From contig NW_003314270.1 of the NCBI RefSeq assembly GCF_000143415.4, positions 1,605,048 to 1,669,047 on the forward strand: a DNA stretch of 64,000 bases, read 5' to 3'. Shown here one piece after another: positions 16,543 through 49,020 of this stretch. Under the pieces are notes generated by a model. That model was not told where the DNA came from, ran no database searches, and saw only the letters and a list, made by a program, of their open reading frames with translations. This stretch comes from Selaginella moellendorffii (Eukaryota > Plantae > Lycopodiophyta). The position numbers were made by a program, and so were the translations under genes. Position 1 is the stretch's first letter. Every line of letters begins with the position of its first letter.

Positions 16543-16568
16543 TAGCCTTTTTCGCCTAGAGGCCTGCA

Positions 16569-20920: not shown

Positions 20921-22090
20921 CTCCACTTCATGTGGGAAATGGTCCTGTTCTAGTGAAGGTTGATGTTCCTGCTGTTCAAGTTCAAGGACAAGGGTGAGAA
21001 CGTGGTCGTGGCCATGATGTTTGCTGTTGGTCATGTGATAAATTTGGTCACACTTTTCGATGTTATCGGCATTTTTTGGATTGGCAGTCATCATTTCCTG
21101 AGTGGAGACCTCGGCGTCAACAATGTCCTGTTGGTGCTATTATAGTGGAAGGTCTGAACACCAAGATGCATCTGGGAAATGAGGAGTCGCACAAGTAATA
21201 GAGGGATCTTGCGTGAATAAGTTAGTGACCCCTCTATCTTTCTTTCGAAAGTGTCATGAAGAGGTTCACTCGGCATCAATTCACTTAGTGTTTACTTTCC
21301 AAACTTATTTTTATAACAAGAGGTTTCCTATTATTCTCTCTATATTTGGTTGATACAAGTTTGAGTTTATCTTCTATTGCTTGACTTATTCTCACATATT
21401 GCTATCTATATTTGCATTGTGCAGTAGAGCCAATTTTCATTCTTTATCGCAACGGTTGTACACATGCATATACACGGGATGAGGCAGACCTAGTTGTGCA
21501 TGTGGGTGATCTCGAGCTTGGGTTGCAGTCATTGTAGGTGGTGCTAAGTCAAGCTTTTAACCTCATCCTTGGTATGGATTGGTTGCAGTGCAATCATACC
21601 AAATGTGACTTTGATGCTTCTCCCCCTTATCTTATACTTTTTTATATTTCATCCATTCCTCTCACTTTTTTACCTCTTTGTCCTTTTGCTTCTACTTCTA
21701 CTTAAATTACTTTTGTCTCCTCATTACTTCCTTATGTGTTTCTGTTTTGTTCTACTCTTCCCTTTTCCAATCCCTCCGACGTTCTTTGTGTTGTAATGGT
21801 TGACCGGCTCATGAAGGAGTATGCTGATCTCTTTGAATTTGACCTATCGTTTGGGGCCAAGATTGCTACACATCATTTGATTCCAACCGGGGATGCTCGT
21901 CCAATCAAGATTTTTGTTCATCACTAGTCACCCAAAGAGATCAAGATTTTACATATAAATGTCAAAAAGATGTTGGAAAAAAGTGTTATTCAAAAGTTAT
22001 GAAGTTCTTGGGTATGTTTGTGACAAAGCCTAATAGGAGTATTCGTTTCTACATCAACTATCATCTGTTAAATGAAGATCCCTTCGACGA

Positions 22091-28000: not shown

Positions 28001-28595
28001 TGACTTCGAACTCCATCTCGGGTCCTTCTTGGATTCCATATCGGATTCCATCTCGGGTCCATCTCGGACTCCATCTTGGTCCATCTCGGACTCCATCTTG
28101 GGTCCATCTCGGACTCTATCTCGGTCCATCTTGGACTCTATCTCAAACTCCATCTTGAGTCCATCTCGGACTCTATCTCGGTTCTATCTCGGGTCCATCT
28201 CGAACTCCATCTCGAACTCCATCTTGGTCTATCTCGGACTCCATCTCAGATTCTAGCTCGGTCCATCTTGGACTCCATCTTGGACTCCATCTTAGACTCC
28301 ATCTCGGACTCTAGCTCGGTCCATCTCGGACTCCATCTTGGGGTCCATCTCAAACTCCATCTCGGACTCCATCTTGGTCCATCTTAGACTCCATCTCGGA
28401 CTCCATCTTGGACTCCATCTTGGACTCTATCTCGGTCCATCTCAGACTCCATCTTGGACTCCATTTTGGACTCCATCTCGGTCCATCTCGGAGCTTTTAG
28501 TCTAAACGTGTTACGGTCATTTGGCTTTCGCTTTGGCCACTACCACGTGGCACCCTTTCGGCTTCACTTTGGAGCTTAGGGATTTGTGTCTCACA
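22091..28595 (-). mobile_element. Family B (LARD-like) copy B0, older and partly deleted
   Basis: Truncated LTR 22091-23187, internal 23188-27289, decayed PBS near 27275-27286, internally deleted LTR 27290-28595. ~122-bp tandem duplication at ~26810-27055. Confidence 0.88.
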
Positions 28596-31500
28596 ATTTA
28601 GCAGCAATCTGAGGTTTTGAAAAACTTCATGCATATCTACATAGTTCTCGGACGTTACTAGAAGGTGATCATGCTGTTGTTATTTCATTATTGAAGCGGA
28701 AAAACTTAGTTGGTCATACTACTTAGTGGGTTATGAAACTTTAAATATATGATTTTTAATGTTGTCCATTTATAATTAATATTGATGCCCTTTCTCAAGC
28801 TCCTCTTCCTTCTTCGCTCTCTTCTCGTTTCTAATGAGGTTTATGAAATTGAATGCTTCGAGATGGGTTTGAGAATTCTGTATCACTTATTGATGACTTG
28901 TCATTCCGGCATTTACATGCTTAATATTGTCTTAAATACAACCTTCTTTATTTTATAAGGACAAATCCAAATGATCATTTATGGTTGGTAGTGCCTTCTA
29001 TCTTTATTCTATGGTTTCTCCATGCCTACCATGATTCTCCTATTCTATGTGGGTATGTGGGACATCATTGTGTGACCGAGAAGTTGCACAAGTGTTTCGA
29101 TTAGCCAGAAATGTGACGTGGTGTTTTTCGGTATATACGTAGCTATGTTTGCTACCAAGCTTGCAATACTTCCCCTCGTGCTGCAGACGGTTAGAGTCAA
29201 TTGCATTTTCATGTCCATTTGAGTTGGTGGCATTTGATCTTGTGGGACCTTTTTCACAATCAACTGTGGGCAATGAGTATGTTATTATTACTTCCAATTA
29301 TTTGACTCGTTGGGTGGAAGTTGATGCTCTTGCTAGTGCCTCTACAATTATTGTTGGATACTTCCTCCTCAATCGAGTGGTGTTCTAACATTCTTGTCTG
29401 GAGTGAATTCTTTTGGATAATAGTCCCACATTTATGGCTGAGGTATTTCATATTTTGACATCTCAATTAAGGATATGCCACACTTTCACAAGTGTTTATC
29501 ATCCACAATGAGACAGTTTGGTGGAACGGCTTATTTAGACATTCAAAGGGATGTATGTGAAATTTTAACATTTGAATTAGGATGGTTATTTGTCGTCTTT
29601 TTAATATGCATATGTCACAGGGGTGCAAAGTTCTATTGGTGCTTCACCATATAAATTTCTATATGATCATAATCCAATATTACCAATAGAGCTAGGTTTA
29701 CCTTTATGATTGCCACAAGGTACAGATGCTAGGTCATAGAATTAGTATTTGACAAGCATTCTTCCACTTGTCCAAGTAGAATTTGCCGAACACCTAGGCC
29801 ATGTACAAATGGGATAACAATGGTGCTACAACTCCTTGTAAGCGACTAAATTTTCCATTCTACTTTAGTCACTTAACCACACCTCCGACCACTTGGAGGA
29901 GTCTCATTCACAACCTCCATAAGTCTAATTTAAGACTTGGGACTTGCTAGCCCCAAGGATGGCATCCATGCCACTCAACATTTGCACTCCGCCCCAGTGC
30001 TCCATGCGTCCAATCCCATGACCGACACTCAAAGGTACCACCGACATGGCAGCCTGTCACGCTAAGGCCATGCCCAATCACCTTTGCCACACTGGTAATC
30101 CAATACCACATGCATCCCAATCTTGGCTCTCCAAGACTAGGCAAACCATCCGTGAGTGGTCATCTCAAATCCACTCTTTAGCATCCTAAGGATGCCCACC
30201 GACAAGGGGAATAGCCTTCCCCAATATCCCTCTGTCAGTCCCTACTAAGTCCCTTTCTACCCCTGGCCGTGTTTGCCAACACTGCCACTAGATCGAGGCC
30301 CACAGGCCCGACCACTAAGTCCCACAGTCCTCTGGGACTTCCTCACCATACGACTGTGTCCTTGGTCACTACCCCAAAGGATTGCTCCTCTTCCTTTCCA
30401 TAGTCTGGGCCTTTGGGGACAACATTTTGAAACACCGTGGCCTTACGCGAGCCACCTAGGTACTCTCCCCACCTTCCGCCCTTGGGTGCTCTAGCCATGG
30501 GCTTAGAGCGAGGTTCCGTTGAGCCACGCCTGGTATCCAAGTAGGTAGTGCCACCCACACTTGGACTGGGAGCATCGGCCAGTCGATCTCCCGGGGGAAC
30601 TAAAGCCGACTCTTGAATACTTCACCAAGCTACCCCGCTTGTCGGTCCGTGTTCACTCTAGCCTTGGACTTCCCAGTGGTCAGCTCATCACCCAACACTG
30701 GGTCTGGCCTTCCTAGGCCAAACTGGCTCCATTGGGCTCTAACCCCCACACTCTCCCTACTATACTTTTGGAACCCCCTGCAGCCCCCCCCCCCCGGGGG
30801 ACGATCGCTTTGGGCTTTCACCCAACTGCCTGTATTAGTATTCGGACTCGGTCTCGGTCCTGAATTTGGACTCGGACTCAGTCTCGGTCTCGGTCTTGGT
30901 CTCGGTCTCGGTCCCGGTCTCGGTTCCATCTCAGACTCCATCTCGGACTCCATCTCGGGTCCATCTCGGACTCCATCTCGGGTCCATCTCGGACTCCATC
31001 TCGGTCCATCTCGGACTCCACTTCGGGTCCATCTCAAATCCATCTCGGACTCCATATCGGACTCCATCTCGGACTCCACTTCGGGTCCATCTCAGATCCA
31101 TCTCAAACTCCATATTGGACTCCATCTCGGACTCCATATCGGACTCCACTTCAGGTCCATCTCAAACTCCACTTTGGGTCCATCTCGGACTCCAACTCGG
31201 GTCCACCTCGGACTCCATCTCGGACACTTCCACGTGTCATGTGTTGGTCCTTTTTGGGTCCCTTTTTGGAGCCTTGCTTATTGCTCGCTTCGTGCTCGTT
31301 CCTTGAGCACTTTGTTGGGAGTTCCACTCTTGCTCTCGACCTTCCAAATCAGAGCTTTTAGTCTAAACGTGTTACACTCGTTTGGCTTTTGCTGCGGCCA
31401 CTACCACGTGGCACCCTTTCTGGCTCCACTTTGGGGCCTAGGGATTTTGTGTCTCACAACTCCACCACCCATAGACGAAGTTCGATGTCCTCATCGAACG

Positions 31501-34500
31501 GTAAACCATTTTGTTAAGTAACACCCGCATGTGTTACCATTTCCATCCTTGGCACCTAGCCAATATTTGTCAATGGTTTGACATTGAAGGCTCACCATGC
31601 CTTCTGCATATTCGTCAATGGTTTGATACCAAAGGCTCACCATGCCTTGCCCATCCTCTAAGGAGGGTAGTCTCTCCAACTTAGAAACTAGTTGGACCAC
31701 ATGTAGTGGTTCTCTCCTTTTATTGGTTTAGTTCTCGCTAAACCTCTTAGAGACCCTTCTCTAATCAATCCCACTACTCCTTCTCGAGTAGTCTCAATTT
31801 CCATCTATTGAACGTTTGCACCTTGGAACTTTTACTCTTTGACTTCTGGAAGTCAATTTCCTAGATGTCTCCAACACCTTGCATTGCACCTATTGTGCAA
31901 CTCCACTTCCCATCCTAGGAAGTTCTTTACTTGAGGGCACCATCATCCTTTCTTCTATTTCGTGCCACCTTGGGCACTAAGTTCCATTTATCATACTTTG
32001 TGCTAGGGCTGTCTATGTCCTATCATTTGGCTACTTTACTGCTCCCTCCCTTGGAGCTTCCACTTTTGCCAAATCAGAGCAATTCAGAATCCATCCTTGG
32101 AAACACACTTCCTTTCCCGCAATTTGTTAGCGTCCAACACATTAGTGTTCCTCGCCTAACTTTGTCACTTGGATTCCTTCCAAGGGATTCCACAGCCCTC
32201 TCTTGGCCACTCATCTTTTGCTCCTATCCGTTGATTGTTGCACCAAGCAACACTGAATCTCTACCTCCCTCCTTGAGGTATTATTTTGATTCCATAGCAA
32301 AGGCTCTGCTTTGCCAAGACTAGGGTGTTCACCCCAAGTAAGTCTCTTTAGCATGTTCTGTTGTGGGCTCTATCCACGGCCCAACTTTGTGACCTTCCCA
32401 TGGGTCTCTTTAAAGACTACTTTCCTTAGACACACTATGCCATCGCAATGACATAGCTCATTTCCCTAAGGTGCTTTTCCCACTTGGTCACCTTGACCAA
32501 GCCACACCACCATCAATAGTTCAAATCAACACTTTGAACTAGGAACCTTATTCCTTAGCCCAAACAAGGACTTTGTCCTTATTTAGCCACAAGATCACCT
32601 AGTGATCTCACCTTAGCACCTTAACAGGTTTGCCAATAGGTACTAGGTCTTCCAGACCTTTAACTTGTTAACTACGACCCCGGGGGCATCCCCCACACTT
32701 GACGGTGCGCCCAAGCCAGCCCTTCTGGCCAAAGGTCCATAACAACTAAGACTGGGTGTCCCCATCTCATTCACCGCATCCTTGGTGCCACTGGCACCAA
32801 AGTGTTCAAGTTAGATATGCTGAGCCACATTAAGCAATCTAACTGTGCATCACGACTCCGAGGCATCCCTCGCTTGGCAGTGTGCCCAAACCAGTCTCCA
32901 CACTGAGAGTCCATGACCATCGAAAAATGAGTGTCCTCATATTCCAAACCATCACCACACCCTAGTGAGTTGGGACTCAAACCCAAGCACTAGAGGGTTG
33001 GGACTTAAACCCAACCTCTGTATATGCATTTACGGACAGCATCACCCAGGATGCCTGGCGTGACTCCCCACACCTGTGCACCAACTTATACTCAAAGCAC
33101 GCTATAGATCACAGCTTAGGAACCTAGTTCCTCCACACTGTCAAGTCCTCTCACTTGACAAGTCTGTGATCATGCATGGACTCCTCCATGCTTGGCCCCA
33201 TGGCCCACCCTTTTTGAAGTTATCACCTTCAACTAGGGTATTTGTTCCCCTGACTTGCCAATCTCGCTTTGGCAAGTCCTCCGACCACTGTAACATGGTT
33301 CCTGCACAAGGGTGAAAGCCCTTGATCATCGACTTTCGTTCAAAGCCCTCTCTTTGAACACTCAGGAACTACTTCCCTCCACTCGATTCTCCACTCCCAG
33401 CTGGCATAACCAACCTTGGTTATGCCCTTTGATTTCTATGGTTCGGTTCTACCCCCTTACTTCTTGCTTTTGGCTTCACACCTTTCCTTCGGTCATTCTC
33501 CTCCAGACCAGGAGGATAGCTTTGCACTTTCTATCATGCCTTAGCAAGTATTCTTAGGGATGAACCTACCCGATAGCCTAGGGAGTGGTTCCTCAATCCA
33601 GGTATGCTCACCCTATAATCCCACACATCGAGATTACGTTGTTGCTTATGGGCCTTTACATGCCCATCACTAGCCTTGCCAAAATTCCATTTTTGGCTTT
33701 GTCCAATTCGAGTAGACAGTCTTCTCCTGTCTTCGCCACCTTGGACATTTGGATAGCACCTTCTATCCATCATTCGCTAGGGACTTAGTCCCTTGGGCCT
33801 TATCTATTGCCTTCGCGACATCAAACACCACCTCCTAGTGTTCTAGAGTGTTCGAGTGTCCCAATGATAGTTTCCTTGACAATGAGTATTTCCTTCCATG
33901 ACATTGACTTACTATATTGCAACATAAGCAACTTATCCCCCGTAAGGGTATATCCAACTTCCTTATGCCATTAAGAAGGCTTGGGTAGCTACCTTCTACC
34001 CGTTTAAACAATTATTTTGCACCTCCTGCTTAGTTACCTCATAGTTGTCAAGTCCTACAACTCATTACTGTTGCTTCCACACCTCCATCATTATCTGGGT
34101 CACCACACTCCAACTGCATGCTCTGCAGTCTAGGCTATGCCATTCCCATTTCCATTGGGATTCCTTTGGCAAGGGGTTCTCATGAACCCACCAACATAGC
34201 CTCAAGGTATCACACCTTGGCACATTTGGTGTCTCCACATTATCGGCTCCACGAGCCTACCTCTATGACACTTCTTCTTTGTGTCTAAGTCTTTGCCAAG
34301 ACCAATACCACTCTTTCTCATGCCAACCATCCGTTAGCACTACACCATAGAGGTCACACACAACTTTGTTTCAAAGTTGTTTTCTTTTGGGAACACCCTT
34401 CCCACGACTTTAGCATAGCACATTTTGCTATCGATGAGATACCCTCTGTTCTCATCCTTGGATCCTATGATCCCCCCCATCCTTCGTGGGGAACCACACA

Positions 34501-34863
34501 CTTTAGTCCAAATGCTTCTATTAGTCCTTTAGGACCATTCCTTGACTCTACTTGAGTCATCCAGCAGTTTTGGACTTGGTTAATCCACAGACCCGTAAGA
34601 TCCTACTTATCGGGCACTAGCTCACTGGAATACACTTCTTGCATTCATGTCCTCACTCACAAGGACTATTTTCACAAGTGTTACTCTAACACTTGATTTT
34701 GTTCTCTGGGGCAACCTTTGCCCCTTAGGACTACTTGTCCATTGTAAGCAACCAAAGGGAACGACTTGAGAGACGATCCATGGGGTTCAAATATAGAGGG
34801 AAAGGGCCCATGAACAAGAGTGCACCCCCTTTTCCAATCGGTTAAGGGTCTTGGGATATTTGG

Positions 34864-34919
34864 GGTTAAGCGTCCTTGGGTTTGAATAGTACTGGGCTGG
34901 GTGACCTCCCGGGAAGTCC
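34864..34919 (+). promoter_or_regulatory. 5S rRNA-derived Pol III internal control region (A box, IE, C box) in Cassandra LTR
   Basis: GGTTAAGCGTCCTTGGGTTTGAATAGTACTGGGCTGGGTGACCTCCCGGGAAGTCC aligns without gaps to plant 5S AGTTAAGCGTGCTTGGGCGAGAGTAGTACTAGGATGGGTGACCTCCTGGGAAGTCC. Confidence 0.9.
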
Positions 34920-34939
34920 AAAACTCAGGAGCTTACACT

Positions 34940-34951
34940 TGGTATCAGAGC
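34940..34951 (+). promoter_or_regulatory. Primer-binding site, tRNA-iMet
   Basis: TGGTATCAGAGC, 2 nt after the Cassandra LTR. Confidence 0.92.
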
Positions 34952-37900
34952 TGTTCCTTAGTCCAACTTTTATTGGTGCTCAAGTATATCACCACTAGTG
35001 TTGGCATTGGAAGGTCCGAGGAGTGGGCCTATCCTTGAGGAGTAGCAAGTTGGGAAGACATGGCTCTCCATTACAGTTCATGTGTGAACTTGTAGACGAG
35101 GTGGTGGATAGAAAAGGGCCAATAATGGAACGACTTTGGGATCTTGGGAACAGTGCAAGGTTTTCCTCATTGAGTTGAGGATGTGATCCGGATGAGCATT
35201 TGTCTCAGCAAATTGGCTTAGGTTGTTGTGGTAAACAACTAAAGTTGGGATCACGGGAAAAATAGAGACTCCAAAACAATAAAGGAGTCACAAGATTATC
35301 CTCATATAGTTGAGGTTGGTGCTCATGAATGTGAGACCAAAGGTAATAACCGTGGAAGGTCAAATACGGAAGAGGACGCAAGTCCTTGAAATGGTAGCCG
35401 GGGCTACCTTTAATAAATGCTGGAACAACCCAAGGAGTTGGGGGTGTATTAAGTGGATGAGTTGGTATTCTCATCACATGGACAAGTAGTCCTAAGGGGC
35501 AAAGGTTGCCCCCAGAAAACAAAATCAAGTGTCGGAGTAACACTTGTGAAAATAGTCCTTTTGAGTAGGACCGGAATGCAAGAAGTGTATTCTAGTGAGC
35601 TAGTGCCTCACAAGTAGGACCTTACGGGTCGGTGGATTAACCAAGTCCAAAATTGCTAGACGACTCAAGTAGAGTCAAGGGATGGTCCTAAAAGGACTGA
35701 TAGAAGCATTTGGACTGAGGTGCGTTATACCCCACAAAGGATGGGGGGGGATCATAGGATCCAAGGATGAGAACAGAGAGTATCTCATCGATGGCAAAAT
35801 GTGCCATGCTAAAGTTATGGGAAAGGTGTTCCCAGAAGAAAACAACTTTGACACAAAGTTGTGTGTGACCTCTATGGTGTAGTGCTAACGGATGGTTGGC
35901 ATGAGAAAGAGCGGTGTTGGTCTTGGCAAAGACTTAAACATGAAGGGGAAGTGTCATAGAGGTAGGCTCGTGGAGCTGATGGTGTGGAGACACCAAATGT
36001 GCCAAGGTGTGATACCTTGAGGCTATGTTGGTGGGTTCATGAGAACCCCTTGCCAAAGGAATCCCAATGGAAATGGGAATGGCATAGCCTAAGCGGTAGA
36101 GCATGCAGCTGGAGTGCGGTGACCCAGATAATGATGGAGGTGTGCAAGCACCAAGCAATGAGTTGTAGGACTTGACAACTATGAGGCAACTAAGCAAGAG
36201 GTGCAAAATAACTGGTTAAACGGGTAGAAGGTAGCTACCCAAGACTTCTAGTATAGGGAAGTCGAATATACCCTTACAGGGGATAAGTTGCTTACGTTGC
36301 GATATAGTAAGTCAATGTCATAAAAGGAAATACTCATTGTCAAGAAAGCCATCATTGGGACACCCGAACACTCTAGAACACCAGAAGTTAGTGTTTGATG
36401 TCGCGAGGGCAATGGATAAAGCCCAAGGGACTAAGTCCCTAGCGAATGATGGATAGAAGGTGGTATCCAAATGTCCAAGGTTGCGGAGACAGAAGAGGAC
36501 TGTCTACCCAAGTTGGACAAAGCCAAAAATGGAATTTTGGCAAAGCTAGTGATGGGCATGTAAAGGCCCATAAGCAACAATGTAATCCTAGTGTGTGGGA
36601 TTATAAGCTGAGCATACCCGGATTGAGGAACCACTCCCTGGGCTATTGGGTAGGTTCATCCCTAAGAATACTTGCTAAGGCATGATAGAAAGTGCAAAGC
36701 TATCCTCCTGGTCTGGAGGAGAATGACCGAAAAAAAGGTGTGAAGCCAAAGGCAAGTAGTATTGGGATGGAACTGAACCATAGAAATCAAAGGGCATAAC
36801 CAAGGTTGGTTATGCCAGCTGGGAGTGGAGAATCAAGTAGGGGCTCAAGGGTGTTGCCGCTAGCAACCGTGATGCCATGAAGAGTCTAAAATATGGAATT
36901 GTCCATGTTAGACTATGTGGCATTTGGAAGGCTTGCAAAAAGGGAGGCCTTAGCAAGCTGAGGGACAGAGTTCCTTCAAGGTTCCCAAAGACGATTCTAG
37001 GTAGCTTAGTACCTAGAAAGGCCAAGTGTAAATGGTTCATGGAACGCGCGAAATTAGAGTGGCGCAGCAGAAGCATGGTCTTGAAGCTTGCCATGAGGCA
37101 AGGCTATCAAGGTTAGGGAAGTAGTTCCCGAGTGTTCAAAGAGAGGGCTTTGAACGAAAGTCGATGGTCAAGGACTTTCACACTTATGTAGGAACCATGT
37201 TACAGTGGTCGGAGGACTTGCCAAGTGAGATTGGCACGTCGGGGGAACAAATACCCTAGTTGAAGGTGATAACTTCAAAAAGGGTGGGCCATGGGGCCAA
37301 GCATGGAGGAGTTCATGCATGATCACAGACATGTCAAGTGAGAGGACTTAGCAGTGTGGAGGAATTAGGTTCCTAAGCTGTGATCTGTAGCGCGCTTTAA
37401 AAATAAGTTGGTGCACCGGCGTGGGGAGTCACGCCAGGCATCTTGTGGATGCCGTCCGTAGATGCATATACGGAGGTTGGGTTCGAGTCCCGACCCTCTA
37501 GTGCTTGGGTTCGAGCCCCAAATCACTAGGGCGTGGTGATAGTTTGGAATATGAGGACACTCATATTTCGGTGGTCATGGACTCTCAGTGGGGAGACTGG
37601 TTTGGGCACACCACCAAGCGAGGGATGCCTCGGAGTCATGATGCACGGTTAGATTGCTTAGTGTGAAAGCTCAGCATATTTAACTTGAACGCTTTGGTGC
37701 AAGTGGCACCAAGGACGTGGTGAGTGAGATGGGGACACCTAATCTCAGTTGCTATGGACCCTTGGCCGGAAGGGTTGGCTTGGGCGCACCGCCAAGTGTG
37801 GGGGATGCCCCTGGGGTCGTAGTTAACAAGTTAAAGGTCTAGAAGACCTAGTACCTATTGGCAAACCTGTTAAGGTGCCGAGGTGAGATCACTAGGTGAT

Positions 37901-38995
37901 CTTGTGGCTAAATAAGGACAAGGTCCTTGTTTGGGTTAAGGAATAAGGTTCCTAGTTCAAAATGTTGAAATTGAACTGTTTAAGATGGTGTGGCTTGGTC
38001 GTGATGACCAAGTGGGAAGAGCACCTAAGGGAAATAAACTATGTCCGTCCGATGGCATAGTGAGTCCGAGGAAAGTAGTCTCTATAAAAGACCCATGGGA
38101 GGGTCACGAAGTTGGGCCATGGATAGAGCCCATAGCGGAAGATGCTAAAGAGACGTACTAGGGGTGAACATCCTCCGGACTTGGCAAAGAAGAGTCTTTG
38201 CTATGGAACCGAAAGGATACCTCAAAAATGGAGGTAGCGATCCGATATTGCTGGGTGCAACAATCAAGGATAGGAGCAAAAGACTAATGGCCAAGTTTGG
38301 GCCATGGAATTTAATGGAAGGGATCCAAATGGCAAAGTTAGCCAAGGAACACTAATGTGTTCGATGCTAACAGCTTGTGGGAAAGGAAGTGGACTTCCAA
38401 GGATGGATTCCGAATTGCTCTGATTTGGCGAAAGTGGAAGCTCCAAGGGAGGGAGCGGTAAGGTAGCCAAATGATAGGGTGATGGACAACCCTAGCACAA
38501 AGTGTGATAAATGGAACTTAGTGCCCAAGGTGGCACGAAATACAAGAGAGGATGATGGTGCCCTCAAGTAATGAACTTCCTAGGATAGGGAAGTGGAGTC
38601 GCACAATCTGTGCAATGCAAGGTGTTGGAGACACCTAGGAAATTGACTCCAAGAAGTCAAAATTCAAAGTTCCAAAGTGCAAAGGTTATATCGATGGAAA
38701 TTGAGACTACTCGAGAAGGAGTAGTGGGATTGACTTAGAGAAGGGTCTCTAAGAGGTTTAGCGAGAACTAAACCAATAAAAGGAGAGAACCATTACATGT
38801 GGTCCAATCAGTCTCTAAGTTGGAGAGACTATGCTCCTTAAAGGATGGACAAGGCATGGTGAGCCTTTGATGTCAAACCATAGACAAAGATTGGCTAGGT
38901 GCCAAGGATGGAAATGGTAACACGTGTGGGTATTACTTTATGAAAGGGTTTACCGTTCGATGAGGACATCGAACTTCGTCTATGGGTGGTGGAGT

Positions 38996-41900
38996 TGTGA
39001 GACACAAAATCCCTAGGCCCCAAAAGTGGAGCCGGAAGGGCGCCACATGGTAGTGGCCGAAGCGAGAGCCAAACGAGCGTAACACGTTTGGACCAAAAGC
39101 TCCGACTTGAAAAGTCAAGAGCGGGAGTGGAACTCCCAACGAAGTGCTCGAGGAACGAGCACGAAGCGAGCAAAAGGCGAGGCTCCAAAAAGGGACCCAA
39201 AAGGACCAACACCTGACACGTGGGAGTGTCCGAGATGGACCCGAGTTGGAGTCCGAGATGGAGTCCGAGATGGAGTCCGAGGTGGACCCAAGATGGACCC
39301 GAAATGGAGTCCGAGATGGAGTCCGAGGTGGACCCGAGATGGACCCGAAATGGAGTCCGAGATGGAGTCCGAGGTGGAGTCCGAGGTGGACCCGAGATGG
39401 ACCCGAAATGGAGTCCGAGATGGAGTCCGAGGTGGACCCGAGATGGACCCGAAATGGAGTCCGAGATGGAGTCCGAGATGGACCCGAGATGGGACCCGAG
39501 ATGGAGTCCGAGATGGAGTCCGAGATGGACCCGAGATGGACCCGAGATGGAGTCCGAGATGGAGTCCGAGATGGAGTCCGAGATGGAGTCCGAAGTCGAG
39601 ACCGAGACCGGGACCGAGACCGGGACCGAGACCGAGACCGAGATCGGGACCGAGGCCGAGGCCGAGGCCGAGGCCGAGACCGAGCCCGAGTCCGAGTCCG
39701 AGTCCGAGTCCGAGTCTGGAGCCTGAGAGGGTGAAAGCCCAAAGCGTTCGTCTCCCAGACCCTGGGGGGTTTGGTGAGCTCCAAAAGTATAGTAGGGGGA
39801 GGACTGAAGTGGAGCCAGTTTGGCCAGGAAAGGCCAGTTTGGCCCAGGAAGGCCAGACCCAGTGTTGGGTGATGAACTGACCACTGGGAAGTCCAAGACT
39901 AGAGTGAATACGGACCGACAAGCGGGGTAGCTTGGTGAAGTGTTCAAGAGCCGGCTCTAGTTCCCCCGGGAGATCGACTGGCCGATGCTCCCAGTCCAAG
40001 TGTGGGTGGCACTACCTACTTGGATACCAGGCGTGGCTCAACGGAACCTCGCTCTAAGCCCATGGCTAGAGCACCTAAAGGCGATAGGTGGGGAGAGTAC
40101 CCAGGTGGCTCGCGTAAGGCCACGGTGTTCCGAAATGTCGTCCCAAAGGCCCAGACTATGGAAAGGAAGAGGAGCAATCCTCTGGGGTAGTGACCAAGGA
40201 CACAGTCGTGTGGTGAGGAAGTCCCAGAGGACCGTGGGACTTAGTGGTCGGGCCTGTGGGCCTCGATCCAGTGGCAGTGTTGGCAAACACGGCCAGGGGC
40301 AGAAAGGGACTTGGTAGGAACTGACAAAGGGACTTTGGGGAAGGTGATTCCCCAGGTCTGTGGGCATCCTAAGGATGCTAAGGAGTGGATCTAGGATGAC
40401 CCCTCGTAGACAGATGGCCCAGTCTTGGAGAGACGGGATGGTGATGCAAGTGGTATTGGACCATTTGCGCAGCAAAGGTGAATGGGCATGGCCTTAGCGT
40501 AACGGGCCGAGATGTCAGTGGTACCTTTGGGTGTCGGTCATGGGATCGGACACGTGGAGCACTTGGACCAAGTGCAAAGGTTGAGTGGCATGGATGCCAT
40601 TCTCGGGGCTAGCAAGCCCCAAGTCCTGAATGGGACTTATGGAGGTTGTGAATGAGACTCCTCCAAGTGGTCGGAGGTGTGGTTAAGTGACTAAAGTAGA
40701 ATGGAAAAATTAGTCGCTTACAAGTTGTGAGACACAAAATCCCTAGGCCCCAAAAGTGGAGCCGGAAGGGCGCCACATGGTAGTGGCCGAAGCGAGAGCC
40801 AAACGAGCGTAACACGTTTGGACCAAAAGCTCCGACTTGAAAAGTCAAGAGCGAGAGTGGAACTCCCAACGAAGTGCTCGAGGAACAAGCACAAAGCGAG
40901 CAAAAGGCGAGGCTCCAAAAAGGGACCCAAAAGGACCAACACCTGACACGTGGGAGTGTCCGAGATGGACCCGAGTTGGAGTCCGAGATGGAGTCCGAGA
41001 TGGAGTCCGAGGTGGACCCGAGATGGACCCGAAATGGAGTCCGAGATGGAGTCCGAGGTGGAGTCCGAGGTGGACCCGAGATGGACCCGAAATGGAGTCC
41101 GAGATGGAGTCCGAGGTGGACCCGAGATGGACCCGAAATGGAGTCCGAGATGGAGTCCGAGATGGACCCGAGATGGGACCCGAGATGGAGTCCGAGATGG
41201 AGTCCGAGATGGACCCGAGATGGACCCGAGATGGAGTCCGAGATGGAGTCCGAGATGGAGTCCGAGATGGAGTCCGAAGTCGAGACCGAGACCGGGACCG
41301 AGACCGAGACCGAGATCGGGACCGAGACCGAGACCGAGGCCGAGGCCGAGGCCGAGACCGAGCCCGAGTCCGAGTCCGAGTCCGAGTCCGAGTCCGAGTC
41401 TGGAGCCTGAGAGGGTGAAAGCCCAAAGCGTTCGTCTCCCAGACCCTGGGGGGTTTGGTGAGCTCCAAAAGTATAGTATGGGGAGGACTGCAGTGGAGCC
41501 AGTTTGGCCAGGAAAGGCCAGTTTGGCCCAGGAAGGCCAGACCCAGTGTTGGGTGATGAACTGACCACTGGGAAGTCCAAGACTAGAGTGAATACGGACC
41601 GACAAGCGGGGTAGCTTGGTGAAGTGTTCAAGAGCCGGCTCTAGTTCCCCCGGGAGATCGACTGGCCGATGCTCCCAGTCCAAGTGTGGGTGGCACTACC
41701 TACTTGGATACCAGGCGTGGCTCAACGGAACCTCGCTCTAAGCCCATGGCTAGAGCACCTAAAGGCGATAGGTGGGGAGAGTACCCAGGTGGCTCGCGTA
41801 AGGCCACGGTGTTCCGAAATGTCGTCCCAAAGGCCCAGACTATGGAAAGGAAGAGGAGCAATCCTCTGGGGTAGTGACCAAGGACACAGTCGTGTGGTGA

Positions 41901-42406
41901 GGAAGTCCCAGAGGACCGTGGGACTTAGTGGTCGGGCCTGTGGGCCTCGATCCAGTGGCAGTGTTGGCAAACACGGCCAGGGGCAGAAAGGGACTTGGTA
42001 GGAACTGACAAAGGGACTTTGGGGAAGGTGATTCCCCAGGTCTGTGGGCATCCTAAGGATGCTAAGGAGTGGATCTAGGATGACCCCTCGTAGACAGATG
42101 GCCCAGTCTTGGAGAGACGGGATGGTGATGCAAGTGGTATTGGACCATTTGCGCAGCAAAGGTGAATGGGCATGGCCTTAGCGTAACGGGCCGAGATGTC
42201 AGTGGTACCTTTGGGTGTCGGTCATGGGATCGGACACGTGGAGCACTTGGACCAAGTGCAAAGGTTGAGTGGCATGGATGCCATTCTCGGGGCTAGCAAG
42301 CCCCAAGTCTTGAATGGGACTTATGGAGGTTGTGAATGAGACTCCTCCAAGTGGTCGGAGGTGTGGTTAAGTGACTAAAGTAGAATGGAAAAATTAGTCA
42401 CTTACA
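38996..42406 (+). repeat. Two tandem family-B LTRs (~1.7 kb each) joined by AGT
   Basis: Both run TGTGAGAC...CTTACA; near identical except for a handful of substitutions and minisatellite copy number. Confidence 0.93.
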
Positions 42407-42409
42407 ACT

Positions 42410-42421
42410 TGGTATCAGAGC
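42410..42421 (+). promoter_or_regulatory. Primer-binding site, tRNA-iMet
   Basis: TGGTATCAGAGC, 3 nt (ACT) after the family-B LTR. Confidence 0.92.
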
Positions 42422-42733
42422 GGTCTCGGGTCCGACTTTGTTGGTTGGCTAAGGGAATCACACCACATGTTGATTGACATCTGGCTGGTCTAGTTTGCTC
42501 TCGCTAGGCTCGACCCGAGGGGTAGGGTGTCAAGAGAGCAGGGCTCTCGGGAGAGCTGCAGCTCTCAGCTTCCGTTCACGAGGGCGTGAACTTGCAGGGA
42601 AGTGTGGTGGATTGTAAGCAACCAAAGGGAACGACTTGAGAGACGATCCATGGGGTTCAAATATAGAGGGAAAGGGCCCATGAACAAGAGTGCACCCCCT
42701 TTTCCAATCGGTTAAGGGTCTTGGGATATTTGG

Positions 42734-42789
42734 GGTTAAGCGTCCTTGGGTTTGAATAGTACTGGGCTGGGTGACCTCCCGGGAAGTCC
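42734..42789 (+). promoter_or_regulatory. 5S rRNA-derived Pol III control region in 3' Cassandra LTR
   Basis: Identical to 34864-34919. Confidence 0.9.
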
Positions 42790-43028
42790 AAAACTCAGGA
42801 GCTTACATCCATGTGATGAGAATACCAACTCATCTATAAGTACACCCCCCAACTCCTTAGGTTGTTCCAGCATTTATTAAAGGTAGCCCCGGCTACCATT
42901 TCAAAGACTTGAGTCCTCTTCCGTATTTGACCTCCCACAGTCATTACTTCTGGTCTCACATTCATGAGCACCAACCTCAACTATATGAGGATAATCTTGT
43001 GACTCCTTTATTGCTTTGGAGTCTTTAT

Positions 43029-46000
43029 TGTAAGTGACTAATTTTTCCATTCTACTTTAGTCACTTAACCACACCTCCGACCACTTGGAGGAGTCTCATT
43101 CACAACCTCCATAAGTCCAACTCAGGACTTGGGGCTTGCTAGCCCTGAGAATGGCATCCATGCCACTCAACCTTAGCACTTGGTCCAAGTGCTCCACGTG
43201 TCCGATCCCATGATTGACACCCCAAGGTACCACCGATGTATCGGCCCATTACACTAAGGCCATGCCCAATTACCTTGGTCACACTGGTGGTCCAACACCA
43301 CCTGCATTCAAATCCCGTCTCTCAAAGACTAGGTCATCCGTCCATGAGGGATCATCCCAGATCCACTCCTTAACATCCTTAGGATGCCTACAGACATGGG
43401 GAATAGCCTTCCCCAATATCTCTGTTCCGGTCCCCACCAAGTCCCTTTCTGTCCTTGGCTGTGTTCGCCAACACTGCCACTGGATCAAGGCCCACCGGCC
43501 CGACCACTAAGTCCCACTATCCTCGAGGACTTCCTCACTGTGTGACTGTGTCCTTGGTCACCCCACCAGAGGGCTACCCCTCTTCCTTTCCACAGTCTGG
43601 GACTTTGGGACACCATTTCGGAACACCGTGGCTTTACGCGAGCCACCTGGGTACTCTCCCCACCTTTCACCTTTAGGTGCTCTAGCCATGGGCTTAGAGC
43701 GAGGTTCCATTGAGCCACGCCTGGTATCCAAGTAGGTAGTGCCACCCACACTTGGACTGGGAGCATCGGCCAGTCGATCTCCCGGGGGAACTAGAGCCGG
43801 CTCTTGAACACTTCACCAAGCTACCCTGCTTGTCAGTCCGTGTTCACTCTAGTTTTGGACTTCCCAGTGGGCAGCTCATCACCCAACACTGGGTCTGGCC
43901 TTCTTGGGCCAAACTGGCCTTTTCTGGCCAAACTGGCTCCACTGCAGTCCTCCCCCTAATATACTTTTGGAGCTCACCAAACCCCCCAGGGTCTAGGAGA
44001 CGAACGCTTTGGGCTTTCACCCTCTCAGGCTCCGGACTCGGACTCGGACTCGGACTCGGACTCGAACTCGGACTCGGACTCGGACTTGGGCTTGGGCTCG
44101 GTCTCGGTCTCGGTCCCGATCTCGGTCTCGGTCTCGGTCTCGGTCCCGGTCTCGGTTTTGGTCCCGGTCTCGACTTTGGACTCCATCTCGGGTCCATCTC
44201 GGACTCCAACTCGGACTCCATCTCGGACTCCATCTCGGGTCCATCTCGGGTCCATCTCGGACTCCATCTCGGACTCCACCTCGGACTCCGTCTCGGGTCC
44301 ATCTCGGGTCCCATCTCGGGTCCATCTCGGGTCCATCTCGGGTCCCATCTCGGGTCCCATCTCGGGTCCATCTCGGGTCCATCTCGGACTCCATCTCGGA
44401 CTCCATCTCGGGTCCATCTCGGACTCCATCTCGGACTCCAACTCGGACTCCACTTCGGACTCCAACTCGGGTCCATTTCGGACACTTCCACGTGTCATGT
44501 GTTGGTCCCTTTGGGTCCCTTTTTTGGAGCCTCGCTTATTGCTCGCTTCGTGCTCATTCCTCGAACACTTTGTTGGGAGTTCCACTCCCGCTCTCAACCT
44601 CTCAAGTCGGAGCTTTTAGTCCAAACGTTTTACGCTCGTTTGGCTTTCGCTTCGGCCACTACCACGTGGCACCCCTCCAGCTCCACTCTAGGGCCTAGGG
44701 ACTTTGTTTCTCACAACTCCACCACCCATAGATGAAGTTCGATGTCCTCATCGAACGGTAAACCATTTTATAAAGTAACACCCGCATGTGTTACCATTTC
44801 CATCCTTGGCACCTAGCCAATATTTGTCAAGGGTTTGACATTGAAGGCTCACCATGCCTTTTGCATATTCCTCAATGGTTTGACACTAAAGGCTCACCAT
44901 GCCTTGCCCATCCTCTAAGGAGGGTAGTCTCTCCAACTTAGAGACTGATTGGACCACATGTAGTGGTTCTCTCCTTTTATTGGTTTAGTTCCCGCTAAAC
45001 CTCTTAGAGACCCTTCTCTAATCAATCCCACTACTCCTTCTAGAGTAGTCTTAATTTCCATCTATTGACCGTTTTGCACCTTGAAACTTTTACCCTTTTG
45101 ACTTTTGGAAGTCAATTTCCTAGGTGTCTCCAACACCTTGCATTGCACCGATTGTGGAACTCCACTTCCCTATCCTAGGAAGTTCATTACTTAAGGGCAC
45201 CATCATCCTCTCTTCTATTTCGTGCCACCTTGGGCACTAAGTTCCATTTATCATACTTTGTGCTAGGGCTATCCATGGCCCTATCATTTGGCTACCTTAC
45301 CGCTCCCTCCCTTGGAGCTTCCACTTTTGCCAAATCGAAGCAATTCGGAATCCATCCTTGGAAACACACTTCCTTTCCCGCAATTTGTTAGCGTCCAACA
45401 CATTAGTGTTCCTCGCCTAACTTTGTCACTTGGATTCCTTCCAAGGGATTCCACGGCCCTATCCTGGCCACTCATCTTTTGCTCCTATCCGTTGATTGTT
45501 GCACCCAACAACACCGAATGTCTACCTCCCTCCTTGAGGTATTCCTTTGATTCCATAGCAAGGGCTTTGCTTTTGCCAAGACTAGGGTGTTCACCCTTAG
45601 TAAGTCTCTTTAACACCTTCTGCTGTGGGCTCTATCCACGGCCCAACTTGTGACCCTCCCATGGGTCTCTTATAAAGACTACTTTCCTTGCTCACACTAT
45701 GCCATTGCAATGACATAGCTTACTTCCCTAAGGTGCTTTTCCCACTTGGTCACCTTGACCAAGCCACACCATCATTAATAGTTCAAATCAACATTTTGAA
45801 CTAGGAACCTTATTCCTTAACCCAAACAAAGACTTTGTCCTTATTTATCCACAAGATCACCTAGTGATCTCACCTCGGCACCTTAACAGGTTTGCCAATA
45901 GGTACTTGGTCTTCTAGACCTTCAAATTGTTGACTATAACCCCGGGGGCATCCCCCACACTTGGCGGTGCACCCAAGCCAGCCCTTACGGCCAAGGGTTC

Positions 46001-49000
46001 ATAGCAACTGAGATTAGGTGTCCCCATCTCACTCACCACGTCTTTGGTGCCTCTTGCACCAAAGCGTTCAAGTTAGATATGCTAAGCTTTCACACTAAGC
46101 AATCTAACCGTGCATCACGACTCCGAGGCATCCCTCGCTTGGCGGTGTGCCCAAACCAGTCTCCACACTGAGAGTCCATGACCACCGAAATATGAGTGTC
46201 CTCATATTCCAAACCATCACCACGCCCTAGTGATTTGGGACTCGAACCCAAGCACTAGAGGGTCGGGACTCGAACCCAACCTCCGTATATGCATCTATGG
46301 ACGGCATCACCCAGGATGCCTGGCGTGACTCCCCACGCCGGTGCACCAACTTATACTCAAAGCGCGCTATAGATCACAGCTTAGGAACCTAGTTCCTCCA
46401 CATTGCCAAGTCCTCTCACTTGACAAGTCTGTGATCATGCATGGACTCCTCCATGCTTGGCCCCATGGCCCACCCTTTTTGAAGTTATCACCTTCAACTA
46501 GGGTATTTGTTCCCCTGACTTGCCAATCTCGCTTTGGCAAGTCTTCCGACCACTGTAACATGGTTCCTGCACAAGCGTGAAAGCCCTTGATCATCGACTT
46601 TTGTTCAAAGCCCTCTCTTTGAACACTCGGGAACTACTTCCCTAACCTTGATAGCCTTGCCTCATGGCAAGCTTCAAGACCACGCTTCTGCTGCGCCACT
46701 CTAATTTCGCGCGTGCTTTGAACCATTTACACTTGGCCTTTCTAGGTACTAAGCTACCTAGAATCATCTTTGGGAACCTTGAAGGAACCCTGTCCCTTAG
46801 CTTGCTAAGGCCTCCCTTTTTGCAAGCTTTCCAATTACCATATAGTCTAACATGGACAATTCCATATTTTAGACTCTCCATGGCATCACGGTTGCTAGCG
46901 GTAACACCCTTGAGCCCCCACTTGATTCTCCACTCCCAGCTGGCATAACCAACCTTGGTTATGCCCTTCGATTCTTATGGTTCGGTTCTACCCCCTTACT
47001 TCTTGCTTTTGGCTTCACACCTTTCCTTTGGTCATTCTCCTTCAGACTAGGAGGATAGCTTTGCACTTTCTATCATGCCTTAGCAAGTATTCTTAGGGAT
47101 GAACCTACCCGATAGCCTAGGGAGTGGTTCCTCAATCCAGGTATGCTCACCCTATAATCCCACACACTGAGATTACGTTGTTGCTTATGGGCCTTTACAT
47201 GCCCATCGCTAGCCTTGCCAAAATTCCATTTTTGGCTTTGTCCATTTCGAGTAGACAGTCTTCTCCTGTCTCCGCCACCTTGGACATTTGGATAGCACCT
47301 TTTATCCATCATTCGCTAGGGACTTAGTCCCTTGGGCCTTATCTATTGCCCTCGCAACATCAAACACCACCTCCTAGTGTTCTAAAGCGTTCCGGTGTCC
47401 CAATGACGGCTTCCTTGACAATGAGTATTTTCTTTCATAACATTGACTTACCATATCGCAGCATAAGCAACTTATCCCCCGTAAGGGTATATCCAACTTC
47501 CTTATGCCGTTAAGAAGGCTTGGGTAGCTACCTTCTACCCGTTTAACCAATTATTTTGCACCTCTTGCTTAGTTGCCTTATAGTTGTCAAGTCCTACAAC
47601 TCATTGCTGGTGCTTCCACACCTCCATCATTATCTGGGTCACCACACTCCAACTGCATGCTCTACAACTTAGGCTATGCCATTCCTATTTCCATTGGGAT
47701 TCCTTTGGCAAGGGGTTCTCATGAACCCACCAACATAGCCTCAAGGTACCACACCTTGGCACATTTGGTGTCTCCACACCATCGGCTCCACGAACCTACC
47801 TCTATGACACTTTTTCTTTGTGTCTAAGTTTTTGCCAAGACCAATACCGCTCTTTCTCATGCCAACCATTTGTTAGCACGGCACTATAGAGGTCACACAC
47901 AACTTTGTGTCAAAGTTGTTTTCTATTTGGGAACACCTTTCCCACGACTTTAGCACGGCACATTTTGCCATCGATGAGATACCTTCTGTTCTCATCCTTG
48001 GATCCTATGATCCCCCCCCATCCTTCGTGGGGTACAACACACCTCAATCCAAATGCTTCCATCAATCCTTTAAGATTATTCTTTGACTCTATTGGAGTCA
48101 TCCAGCTTTTTGGACTTTGTCATCCGACGACCCATGAGGTTCTACCTTTGAGGTGCCAGCTCACTGGAATACAACTTCTTGTATTCAGGTCCTACTCACA
48201 AGGACTATCTTTGCAAGTGTTACTCCGACACTTGATTTGTTCTCTTGGGGCAACCTTTTGCCTCTTAGGACCACTTGCCCATGTGATGAGAATACCAACT
48301 CATCCTCTAAGTACATCCCCAACTCCTTGGGTTGTTCCAGCATTTATCAAGGGTAACCTCAGCTACCATTTCGAGGACTTGTGTCCTCTCCTATATTTGA
48401 CCTCCCATGGTCATCAATTCCGGTCTCAAAGTTATGAGCACCGGCCTCAACTACATGAGGGTAATCTTGTGACTCCTTTATTATTTTGGAGTCTACATCT
48501 TTCCCGTGATCCCAATTATAGTTGTTTACCACAACTACATTAGCCCGTTTGCTGCGTCAAACGCTCATCTGGATCACATCCTCAACTCACATTCTCTGAG
48601 GAAACCTTATACTATTCCCAAGATCCCAAAGTCGTTCTATTATTAGCCCTTTTCTATCCACCACATCGTGCCCAAGTTCACGCATGAACTTGAGTGGAGA
48701 GCCATGTCCTCTCGACATGCTACTCCTCAAGGATAGGCCCACTCCTAGGACCTTCCAATGCCAACATCAATGGTGATATACTTGAGCACCAATAAAAGTC
48801 GGACTAAGGAATAGCTCCGATACCAAGTTGTAAGCGACTAATTTTTCCATTCTACTTTAGTCACTTAACCACACCTCCGACCACTTGGAGGAGTCTCATT
48901 CACAACCTCCATAAGTCCAACTCAGGACTTGGGGCTTGCTAGCCCTGAGAATGGCATCCATGCCACTCAACCTTAGCACTTGGTCCAAGTGCTCCACGTG

Positions 49001-49020
49001 TCCGATCCCATGATTGACAC
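43029..49020 (-). mobile_element. Family B copy B2, nested in B1 in the same orientation
   Basis: LTR 43029-44715, complete internal 44716-48828 with PBS TGGTATCGGAGC (minus strand, ~48814-48825), and the first ~190 bp of its other LTR (48829-49020). Confidence 0.88.

Follow-up and report, generated by a model that had tools for sequence, protein, structure and literature searches.

A composite LTR-retrotransposon insertion in Selaginella moellendorffii with switches between two non-autonomous families at the PBS

Introduction

Du et al. reportedly found LTR swapping in soybean in 2010, and Kalendar et al. are said to have described both LARDs (large retrotransposon derivatives, in 2004) and Cassandra TRIMs (in 2008). 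How non-autonomous families come by new LTR/interior combinations has mostly been inferred from finished recombinants.

Exchange between co-packaged RNAs and complex elements flanked by a TSD are established (PMC1950507; PMC6894440). In the template-switch complex elements of Sabot and Schulman (2007; PMC1950507), template exchange between co-packaged molecules is taken to precede a single integration, and the products, like the locus described here, have more than two LTRs, one TSD and near-identical outer LTRs. Those elements are, however, LTR-int-LTR-int-LTR arrays of one family joined via R/LTR homology, whereas here the PBS is where two families join, and the order of the inner unit is circularly permuted. 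Where those elements have a single internal LTR between two interiors of the same family, the present insertion has a directly adjoining pair, of a family other than that of the outer LTRs. Non-autonomous families with hybrid LTR/internal combinations are also on record, and those of a sugar beet survey (PMC13570524) share with this locus foreign LTR/interior combinations and modular PBS- and PPT-proximal segments. The reported hybrids are single recombinant elements; by contrast, the present insertion holds both reciprocal products, with an LTR-LTR joint between them. That joint is similar to those of 2-LTR circles and LTR-LTR junction eccDNA (PMC9324142), i.e. head to tail, with an indel of a few nucleotides and one complete element length, although such circles are extrachromosomal and regarded as dead ends, whereas here the topology is chromosomal, opened at the PBS and located inside another element.

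With Cassandra TRIMs (PMC7215508; PMC10853983) the outer element shares a 5-bp TSD, a very short interior without coding capacity, a PBS of the initiator tRNA-Met type and short LTRs in which 5S-derived boxes A and C are spaced 18 nt apart. Its PBS lies a few nucleotides from the 5S-like end, as reported in ferns; the element differs in that the 5S segment is truncated, each box has one mismatch and the interior is interrupted by 7.5 kb of the second family, termed B. Family B resembles LARDs in its long LTRs (~1.7 kb), ~4-kb non-coding interior, PBS and PPT, but differs from them in that its interior opens with a fossil TRIM-like (Cassandra-like) interior. The locus is a variant of known chimeric and complex LTR elements, and rare fossil evidence that two parasitic families exchanged parts.

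Results

Anatomy and target site of the insertion

The window, i.e. the whole 64-kb stretch of DNA that was analysed, contains the insertion and its host as follows.

29832-49909, reverse strand: old B complex of three LTRs, which hosts the insertion; TSD AGGAG, in opposite orientation to the composite
34738-34742, forward strand: left TSD copy, TCCAT; three B copies without the insertion have one TCCAT at the corresponding position
34743-34937, forward strand: Cassandra-like 5' LTR, 195 bp, TGTAAGC...GCTTACA, identical to 42613-42807
34938-34951, forward strand: left junction, CT spacer (34938-34939) and PBS TGGTATCAGAGC (34940-34951); crossover interval from Cassandra to B
34952-38995, forward strand: B internal domain, 4,044 bp, colinear with other B copies
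34952-35148, forward strand: first ~200 nt of the B interior, a diverged Cassandra-like leader (by local alignment) with a GTTC...GAAC hairpin, a TGGTGGAT polypurine module (to 35109) and ~28 nt like the start of the Cassandra LTR
35149-38995, forward strand: remaining B interior, non-coding, 82-92% identical to other B copies, ending in a hairpin-PPT module ...GGGTGGTGGAGT
38996-40722, forward strand: B LTR1, 1,727 bp, TGTGAGAC...GCTTACA, with a 12-mer/46-mer array at 39228-39714
40723-40725, forward strand: AGT, the 3-nt head-to-tail joint of the B LTRs, one base different from the ACT spacer
40726-42406, forward strand: B LTR2, 1,681 bp, 99.1% identical to LTR1 and without one 46-bp repeat unit
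42407-42421, forward strand: right junction, B-type ACT spacer (42407-42409) and PBS TGGTATCAGAGC (42410-42421); crossover interval from B to Cassandra
42422-42612, forward strand: Cassandra internal domain, 191 nt, ending in a hairpin-PPT module ...GTGTGGTGGAT, with a match to a fragment at 20631-20736
42613-42807, forward strand: Cassandra-like 3' LTR, identical (195/195) to 34743-34937
42808-42812, forward strand: right TSD copy, TCCAT, pairing with the left copy

Direct checking of the coordinates gave the order Cassandra LTR, CT, PBS, B internal domain, B LTR, AGT, B LTR, ACT, PBS, Cassandra internal domain and Cassandra LTR, which agrees base for base with the order of parts in a preliminary description of the locus. 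That description had also claimed a single insertion with a TCCAT TSD and identical 195-bp outer LTRs, and both the LTR identity and the empty site bear this out: joined with one TCCAT, the flanks align unbroken, and with 89-93% identity, to three paralogous B copies. These sites validate the TSD as real. The evidence thus supports a single integrase-type insertion via the Cassandra ends, the site of which is in the second internal domain of the host B complex.

The Cassandra-like element

A 5S-like segment is present at 34846-34934 in the 5' LTR, and equally in the identical 3' LTR. Its match to the Rfam 5S_rRNA model is significant (33.9 bits, E=2.8e-5), yet below the 38-bit gathering score, with ~36 model positions missing. 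This qualifies the label "5S-bearing" applied earlier, the segment being truncated and below threshold. The published Cassandra query (PMC7215508) comprises box A RGTTAAGYRHGY, 15-25 nt, box C RRRATRGGTRACY, 5-200 nt and TGGTATCAGAGC. It is not matched exactly, in that box A (GGTTAAGCGTCC) and box C (GGGCTGGGTGACC), at 34864-34906, have one mismatch each; the spacing of 18 nt between the boxes and the location of the PBS 33 nt downstream are both canonical. In view of this near miss, the element is filed as Cassandra-like.

The initiator tRNA-Met PBS beside the 5' LTR, the PPT before the 3' LTR, the 5-bp TSD and the miniature size (195-bp LTR, own non-coding interior of 191 nt) are all as in Cassandra, and the parent element was, by inference, ~595 bp in length. 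The 3' 106 nt of the internal domain are 90.6% identical to the fragment at 20631-20736, the one further piece of Cassandra interior that the window contains. Neither an intact free-standing Cassandra copy nor another Cassandra 5' LTR-PBS junction, against which the CT spacer might be compared, is present in the 64-kb window.

Family B and its LTR-LTR joint

The window contains at least three further B copies, one of which is a 3-LTR complex. Family B is LARD-like in having LTRs of 1.68-1.73 kb, a 4,044-bp interior without gag/pol, and confirmed PBS and PPT; the longest ORF in the interior is of 112 aa, and there is no Pfam match. The two LTRs of the composite differ by 15 mismatches over 1,681 aligned nt and by a 46-bp indel equal to one repeat unit. 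The B LTR-B LTR tandem reported earlier is thus correct in that two LTRs lie head to tail, but 3 nt (AGT) separate them and the copies differ. The joint reads CTTACA-AGT-TGTGAG, the AGT being the same 3 nt found before every B 3' LTR. From PBS to PBS there are one interior and two LTRs; the B part thus amounts to one B unit, no more and no less, that has been opened at the PBS. Its topology is that of two joined B cDNA ends, and the joint resembles the one in a 2-LTR circle. Since it is only ~90% identical to neighbouring B copies, and inverted relative to its host, the B portion was imported, rather than locally copied.

Junctions at the PBS

Both crossovers fall within one 14-nt stretch, CTTGGTATCAGAGC, the PBS TGGTATCAGAGC being of the initiator tRNA-Met type. 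The identity common to the two families around the junction runs through CTTACA and (A)CT into the 12-nt PBS; the earlier placement of the crossovers at the 12-nt PBS is right in that both switches occur at the shared PBS, but too narrow, because the shared identity exceeds 12 nt. As had been observed, the ACT spacer recurs in another B copy (at 48826-48828), and B-type sequence starts with the first base after the first PBS, as seen from a 4,055-nt stretch aligning to another B copy at 90% identity.

Insertion of B into Cassandra by nesting was considered and is rejected, because the inner element reads PBS-int-LTR-LTR-spacer and what repeats on either side of it is the 12-14-nt PBS, with no 5-bp TSD. 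An inner element that lacks a TSD and is circularly permuted accords with the previous statement that this is not ordinary nesting. It is highly improbable that an assembly error or chimeric read joined Cassandra and B at short shared repeats, or falsely doubled the B LTR; nested repeats are indeed dense in the region, but the joins are located exactly at functional boundaries (LTR termini, spacers and PBS) and share no more than 12-20 nt, the two B LTRs can be told apart and meet cleanly, terminus to terminus, and a perfect empty site is reconstructed from the flanks. No sequence related to the composite was found in any collection searched.

Kinship of the two families

Cassandra and B are not independent families: the B interior begins with a diverged Cassandra-like leader, hairpin-PPT module and LTR start. 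Over its first ~200 nt, every B interior aligns colinearly with Cassandra, from the interior through the polypurine-tract module into the beginning of the LTR, with a local alignment score of 64 vs 24.8±3.2 for shuffles; scores in three B copies are 56-76, compared with a maximum of 37 among 936 real control windows. The GTTC..GAACTT..TGGTGGA(G)T module occurs in nine copies, only at the Cassandra and B PPT positions and in the B leader. Common to both families are the LTR termini (TGT.AG...CTTACA), the initiator tRNA-Met PBS, and the homologous leader and hairpin-PPT module.

These results qualify the proposal that each LTR is followed by the other family's internal domain: the order is as proposed, but because the B interior starts Cassandra-like, it is only partly foreign. 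On the basis of the shared termini, PBS, leader and PPT module, Cassandra and B probably depend on the same autonomous (Copia-like) partner, and probably meet in the same particles.

Divergence of the LTR pairs

The Cassandra LTRs have 0/195 differences and the B LTRs 7/1218 in their unique region, mostly of CpG type; as a test of equal age, which had been suggested earlier, this comparison has no power (Fisher p=0.60). The counts lean slightly, and non-significantly, towards a B joint that is older than this insertion.

Such a lean could reflect birth of the composite elsewhere, by either of the PBS routes set out in the Discussion, followed by transcription from Cassandra LTR to Cassandra LTR and retrotransposition as an 8-kb unit, i.e. 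a self-propagating composite family. Identical outer LTRs around an inner B pair diverged by 0.6-0.9% (CpG-type) look as if reverse transcription had recently reset the outer LTRs only, multi-LTR Cassandra elements with TSDs are thought to have spread in this way in pear (PMC4079214), and the fossil Cassandra-like interior with which B starts implies that such hybrids are able to found lineages. The locus is, nonetheless, quite unlikely to be a daughter copy of this type: the age difference is non-significant, a transcript would need to read through two complete 1.7-kb B LTRs, and a second composite or chimeric junction is absent from the 64-kb window and the collections scanned.

Discussion

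The PBS is the obligatory annealing site of plus-strand strong-stop DNA. We propose, with a probability of about one half, that replication intermediates of the Cassandra-like TRIM and the LARD-like B were joined at their common PBS prior to integration, then inserted once by the Cassandra ends. Since plus-strand strong-stop DNA must anneal at the PBS, the Cassandra plus-strand end would have paired with a B template rather than with the Cassandra one. In one route (i), Cassandra and B would swap partners reciprocally, giving two hybrid linear cDNAs, the B ends of which would then be ligated as in 2-LTR-circle formation. In another (ii), the Cassandra strand would make one round of copying on a B 2-LTR circle that had been ligated beforehand, and return to Cassandra's own minus strand via the second PBS. 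In either case, integrase would finally act on the two Cassandra ends in one integration.

Joining before integration is supported by the TSD and empty-site reconstruction, the identical Cassandra LTRs, the permuted order with exact spacers and PBSs at both junctions, the import of the B portion, the shared cis modules, the leader homology far above both controls, and the small indel at the LTR-LTR joint, which is a hallmark of end-joined linear cDNA (PMC9324142). Against it, no sequence feature dates the exchange relative to integration, and the B LTR pair has seven differences where the Cassandra pair has none.

Retroviral plus-strand transfer is overwhelmingly intramolecular, which weighs against route (i), as does its need for two complete minus strands per particle, intermolecular ligation and integration of the joined product. 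Reciprocal plus-strand transfer with end joining, the mechanism put forward in the preliminary description, does fit the junctions and the topology of the joint, but these features are not specific to it. For route (ii), a nuclear circle and a still incomplete Cassandra cDNA would have to share one compartment. Under a simpler read-through model only one B LTR results, so the second would need a separate explanation. Every feature is equally well predicted if a B 2-LTR circle underwent a single crossover at the PBS, or was copied from there for one turn, before or after Cassandra integration.

It may be instead that a plain Cassandra inserted first, generating the TSD, and that a B 2-LTR circle or broken B cDNA later entered at the 14-nt CT spacer plus PBS, by one crossover or microhomology-mediated repair. 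The exact order and both junctions observed result if a circle and the resident PBS cross over reciprocally just once, the PBS is the longest perfect identity between Cassandra and B, the LTR-LTR joint is circle-like, and plants have chimeric TE eccDNA and complex TE-linked structural variants (PMC10462705). By contrast, 12-14 nt is very short for homologous recombination, and a break or invasion is required exactly at the PBS of one 595-bp element. Capture after integration, which we consider unlikely, also predicts a Cassandra LTR pair at least as old as the B pair, with which 0/195 vs 7/1218 is compatible, though not in its favour (P(0) ~0.33).

A more extended form of joining before integration, rather doubtful in our view, is that the locus is a fossil of heterologous co-packaging, in which an in-particle reciprocal PBS swap was followed by ligation of the B ends and integration of the product, B itself having been founded by an older B-LTR/PBS/Cassandra hybrid, and PBS swapping being a recurrent source of new non-autonomous LTR families. 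The suggestion that the locus provides evidence of which particles carry Cassandra does not hold, because B itself is non-coding; even under the reciprocal-transfer model, only a particle common to Cassandra and B would be shown.

The locus bears on how, and by whom, TRIMs such as Cassandra are mobilised. A single insertion preserves the two reciprocal junctions as well as the scar of LTR-LTR end joining, and so is a record of two families exchanging sequence where strand transfer must take place. Along with the termini, PBS, leader and PPT module that the families share, it predicts one autonomous partner for Cassandra and B, for the finding of which the shared cis-signal signature may be used. 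If the pre-integration route is true, cDNA forms joined at their ends are able to enter the germline genome, although they are usually considered dead ends; if the reading of recurrent PBS swaps is true, PBS swapping would create new non-autonomous LTR families.

Structure of the composite insertion

The stretch 34500-43100 was read directly and each boundary was checked by script. The composite, in which a unit of family B, a large non-coding LTR element, is joined into a Cassandra-like TRIM at the primer-binding site (PBS) common to both, is ordered as follows.

Parts of the composite and its target-site duplication (TSD)
34738-34742 and 42808-42812, TSD TCCAT, bracketing the insert 34743-42807
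34743-34937, Cassandra-like LTR, left
34938-34939, CT spacer
34940-34951, PBS TGGTATCAGAGC, left (PBS1)
34952-38995, family-B internal domain
38996-40722, B LTR1
40723-40725, AGT joint
40726-42406, B LTR2
42407-42409, ACT spacer
42410-42421, PBS, right (PBS2)
42422-42612, Cassandra internal domain
42613-42807, Cassandra-like LTR, right

The outer Cassandra-like LTRs are identical (195/195), as the preliminary description had it, whereas the two B LTRs show 15 mismatches over 1,681 aligned positions and a 46-bp indel that corresponds exactly to a single unit of the LTR's internal 12-mer/46-mer array. Each B LTR carries one such array (39228-39714 and 40958-41398; 12-mer unit GTCCGAGATGGA, higher-order periods of 46 and 58 bp), after which come CCGAGA-type 6-mer repeats; the long ORFs on both strands at the arrays are repeat by-products.

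Identity of the two families

Each LTR of the small element contains a 5S-like segment scoring 33.9 bits in Rfam (E=2.8e-5) with ~36 model positions missing, a score that falls below the 38-bit 5S threshold and goes unreported at gathering thresholds. The spacing of box A and box C is 18 nt, with one mismatch per box relative to the published Cassandra query (PMC7215508), and the PBS starts 5 nt past the 5S-like end, an arrangement resembling that reported for ferns (PMC7215508). By these sequence features the small element is classed as Cassandra-like. Family B, with LTRs of ~1.7 kb and a 4.0-kb interior having no ORF longer than 112 aa and no Pfam match, is LARD-like; exact look-up of the 112-aa ORF returned no record and a homology search no match. 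In the B LTR and the deeper B interior no further Cassandra-LTR or 5S remnants stood above shuffled controls, and the same holds for a B LTR site, TGACC-ACTGGGAAGTCCAAGACT (~39875-39900 and ~41560-41585), with a likeness to the 3' end of the 5S-like region in Cassandra. A SCARNA18 Rfam match overlapping that site (25 bits vs 40) is sub-threshold and was discarded as noise.

A single insertion with an imported B part

The host of the composite is an old B complex; the composite lies inverted in the second of its internal domains.

Host complex and its parts
29832-49909, minus strand, old B complex with three LTRs, between copies of the TSD AGGAG
48829-49904, minus strand, LTR
48814-48828, minus strand, ACT spacer and PBS
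44719-48813, minus strand, first interior
43029-44715, minus strand, middle LTR
29837-31458, minus strand, third LTR

The outer LTRs of the host are 91% alike and each is less close to the middle one (84-88%); at the second interior neither spacer nor PBS is present, and ~320 nt are missing from its start. Such an arrangement fits the TSD-flanked complex type of Sabot & Schulman.

With a single TCCAT between them, the flanks of the composite form a continuous alignment to each of three other B copies (89-93% identity), so TCCAT is a true TSD, and the empty site thus reconstructed bears out the earlier proposal of a single TSD-flanked insertion. Ordinary nesting, likewise discounted previously, is excluded by the order of parts and the TSD. 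The composite's B segment shares only ~90% identity with the B copies around it and was therefore imported rather than copied locally; this identity, together with the opposite orientation, led us to reject an origin from the neighbouring copies.

The sense strand of all B copies in 22000-50000 is strongly purine-rich (GC skew ~+0.22-0.26, AT skew +0.1-0.26), and the skew profile changes sign exactly at the composite, where it is inverted in its host. By its Cassandra-type TRIMs, its plant-type PBS and its exons for a PHD finger and a mitochondrial carrier, the window is plant-like and not human. The remaining repeats and genes noted in it are these.

Other features
12172-13767, minus strand, host-gene ORFs with PHD finger and DUF7797, left of the repeat cluster
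16460-16543, plus strand, tRNA-Ser(CGA) gene, left of the repeat cluster
17832-18392, plus strand, mitochondrial-carrier exon, left of the repeat cluster
20439-20920, rearranged Cassandra
22086-28596, minus strand, more diverged B copy (~82% identity), with decayed PBS (TGGTATTGGAGC) and a 3' LTR ending abruptly at 22086
61254-61448, minus strand, Cassandra-like solo LTR with 87% identity to those of the composite; its TG has become TA, and the 5-bp flanks (CCAGC/CCAAC) match imperfectly

In the rearranged Cassandra an inverted LTR copy (20741-20920, without its first 14 nt) adjoins the Cassandra interior at about position 94 and is followed on the minus strand by that interior and then the 3' LTR; the 183-nt inverted arms are 85% complementary, with 114 nt between them. 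Its origin may lie in a snap-back cDNA, or in a pair of insertions in inverted orientation combined with a deletion.

Junctions and topology

The sequence past PBS1 is B-type from its first base, as previously described, and that past PBS2 is Cassandra-type, its 3' 106 nt being 90.6% identical to the one further piece of Cassandra interior that the window contains. The left spacer has 2 nt (CT), and the right has the 3 nt of other B copies (ACT or ATT type), in agreement with the B-type spacer first noted there. These sequence types and spacers place both family switches within CTTGGTATCAGAGC, and the proposal that both crossovers lie at the shared PBS is thus upheld. The native Cassandra spacer is assumed to be CT, this being the sole junction of a Cassandra 5' LTR with a PBS in the window.

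Between the two PBSs the B part comprises one interior and two LTRs. It amounts to a full element in circular permutation, with the opening at the PBS, and this topology excludes a standard tandem array, in which a single LTR is shared. The B LTRs meet as CTTACA-AGT-TGTGAG. The AGT is the trinucleotide before every B 3' LTR (...GGTGGAGT followed by TG); it reverse-complements the ACT spacer and differs from it by one base. A head-to-tail joint with an indel of a few nucleotides is the described hallmark of end-joined linear cDNA (PMC9324142).

Routes to the composite

The preliminary description invoked reciprocal plus-strand transfer between co-packaged RNAs. That model does yield the observed order of parts, as do three other routes. 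In that model (route A), reciprocal heterologous annealing at the PBS would give two hybrid linear cDNAs, the B ends of which would be ligated and the Cassandra ends integrated. In another (route B), the PBS of a Cassandra cDNA would cross over once with a B 2-LTR circle, or copy the circle for one turn. The PBS is the obligatory annealing site in reverse transcription, and for this reason exchange before integration, by either of these routes, is favoured, with a probability of roughly one half for the two together. Later capture of such a B circle, by a Cassandra that occupied the site beforehand (route C), would produce the same order and is considered unlikely; retrotransposition of an older composite to the site (route D), which would do so too, is rated lower still, and an assembly artefact is very improbable.

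Simple read-through, in which a single plus strand runs on into the tRNA and then makes another jump, accounts for one B LTR where two are present, and does not suffice as an explanation. A path made wholly by reverse transcriptase, with repeated minus-strand switches, is a minor variant; the AGT joint is accommodated in it, AGTTG (PPT/U3 border) matching ACTTG (U5/PBS border) at 4 of 5 positions, but at least three templates are required.

The differences within LTR pairs (0/195 for Cassandra; for B 7/1218, leaving aside the repeat array; P(0) ~0.33, Fisher p=0.60) have no power to order events or to check the equal age expected of the two pairs. At least four of the seven B-pair differences are CpG-type transitions and, when polarised, ~5-6 appear derived in LTR2 and one in LTR1, a bias that is not significant and includes two sites with split outgroups. 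LTR dating does not separate the four routes.

A scan for CTTACA-N2-3-PBS gave at least 120 loci, and among the matches listed none had BLAST similarity to the composite, the source organism being absent from the collection. The 29-nt chimeric junction had 0 matches in metagenomes, and a 5S-derived 18-mer 0 in viral contigs, both likewise collections without the source organism.

Relation to known elements and kinship of the families

TSD-flanked complex elements arising from template switching (PMC1950507), Cassandra elements with multiple LTRs (PMC4079214; PMC7215508) and hybrid LTR/interior combinations in non-autonomous families (PMC13570524) have been reported; plants commonly have tandem structures of LTR retrotransposons (PMC11899658), and a review covers recombination in the course of reverse transcription (PMC6894440). 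The composite, a single locus, is a variant of these chimeric and complex types; in the literature we found no description of both reciprocal PBS-junction products in one insertion, linked by an LTR-LTR joint. Because family B is non-coding, the composite cannot reveal which particle transports Cassandra.

Over its first ~200 nt the B interior gives a colinear alignment to that of Cassandra plus the initial ~28 nt of the Cassandra LTR, with a score of 64 vs 24.8±3.2 for shuffles; scores in three B copies are 56-76 vs a maximum of 37 among 936 real control windows. The window contains nine occurrences of a module, GTTC...GAACTT...TGGTGGA(G)T, of which two precede Cassandra 3' LTRs, four precede B 3' LTRs and three lie ~125-158 nt into B interiors. 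In the hairpin preceding the polypurine tract only the invariant GTTC/GAAC stem was recovered, covariation having no statistical support, and no autonomous element with the same signals is present in the window. The families also have common termini (TGTAAG/TGTGAG...CTTACA) and a common PBS. Sequence comparison thus indicates that the Cassandra-like and B families are related; family B may have descended from an older join of B LTR, PBS and Cassandra-type interior, and both families probably depend on the same autonomous partner.
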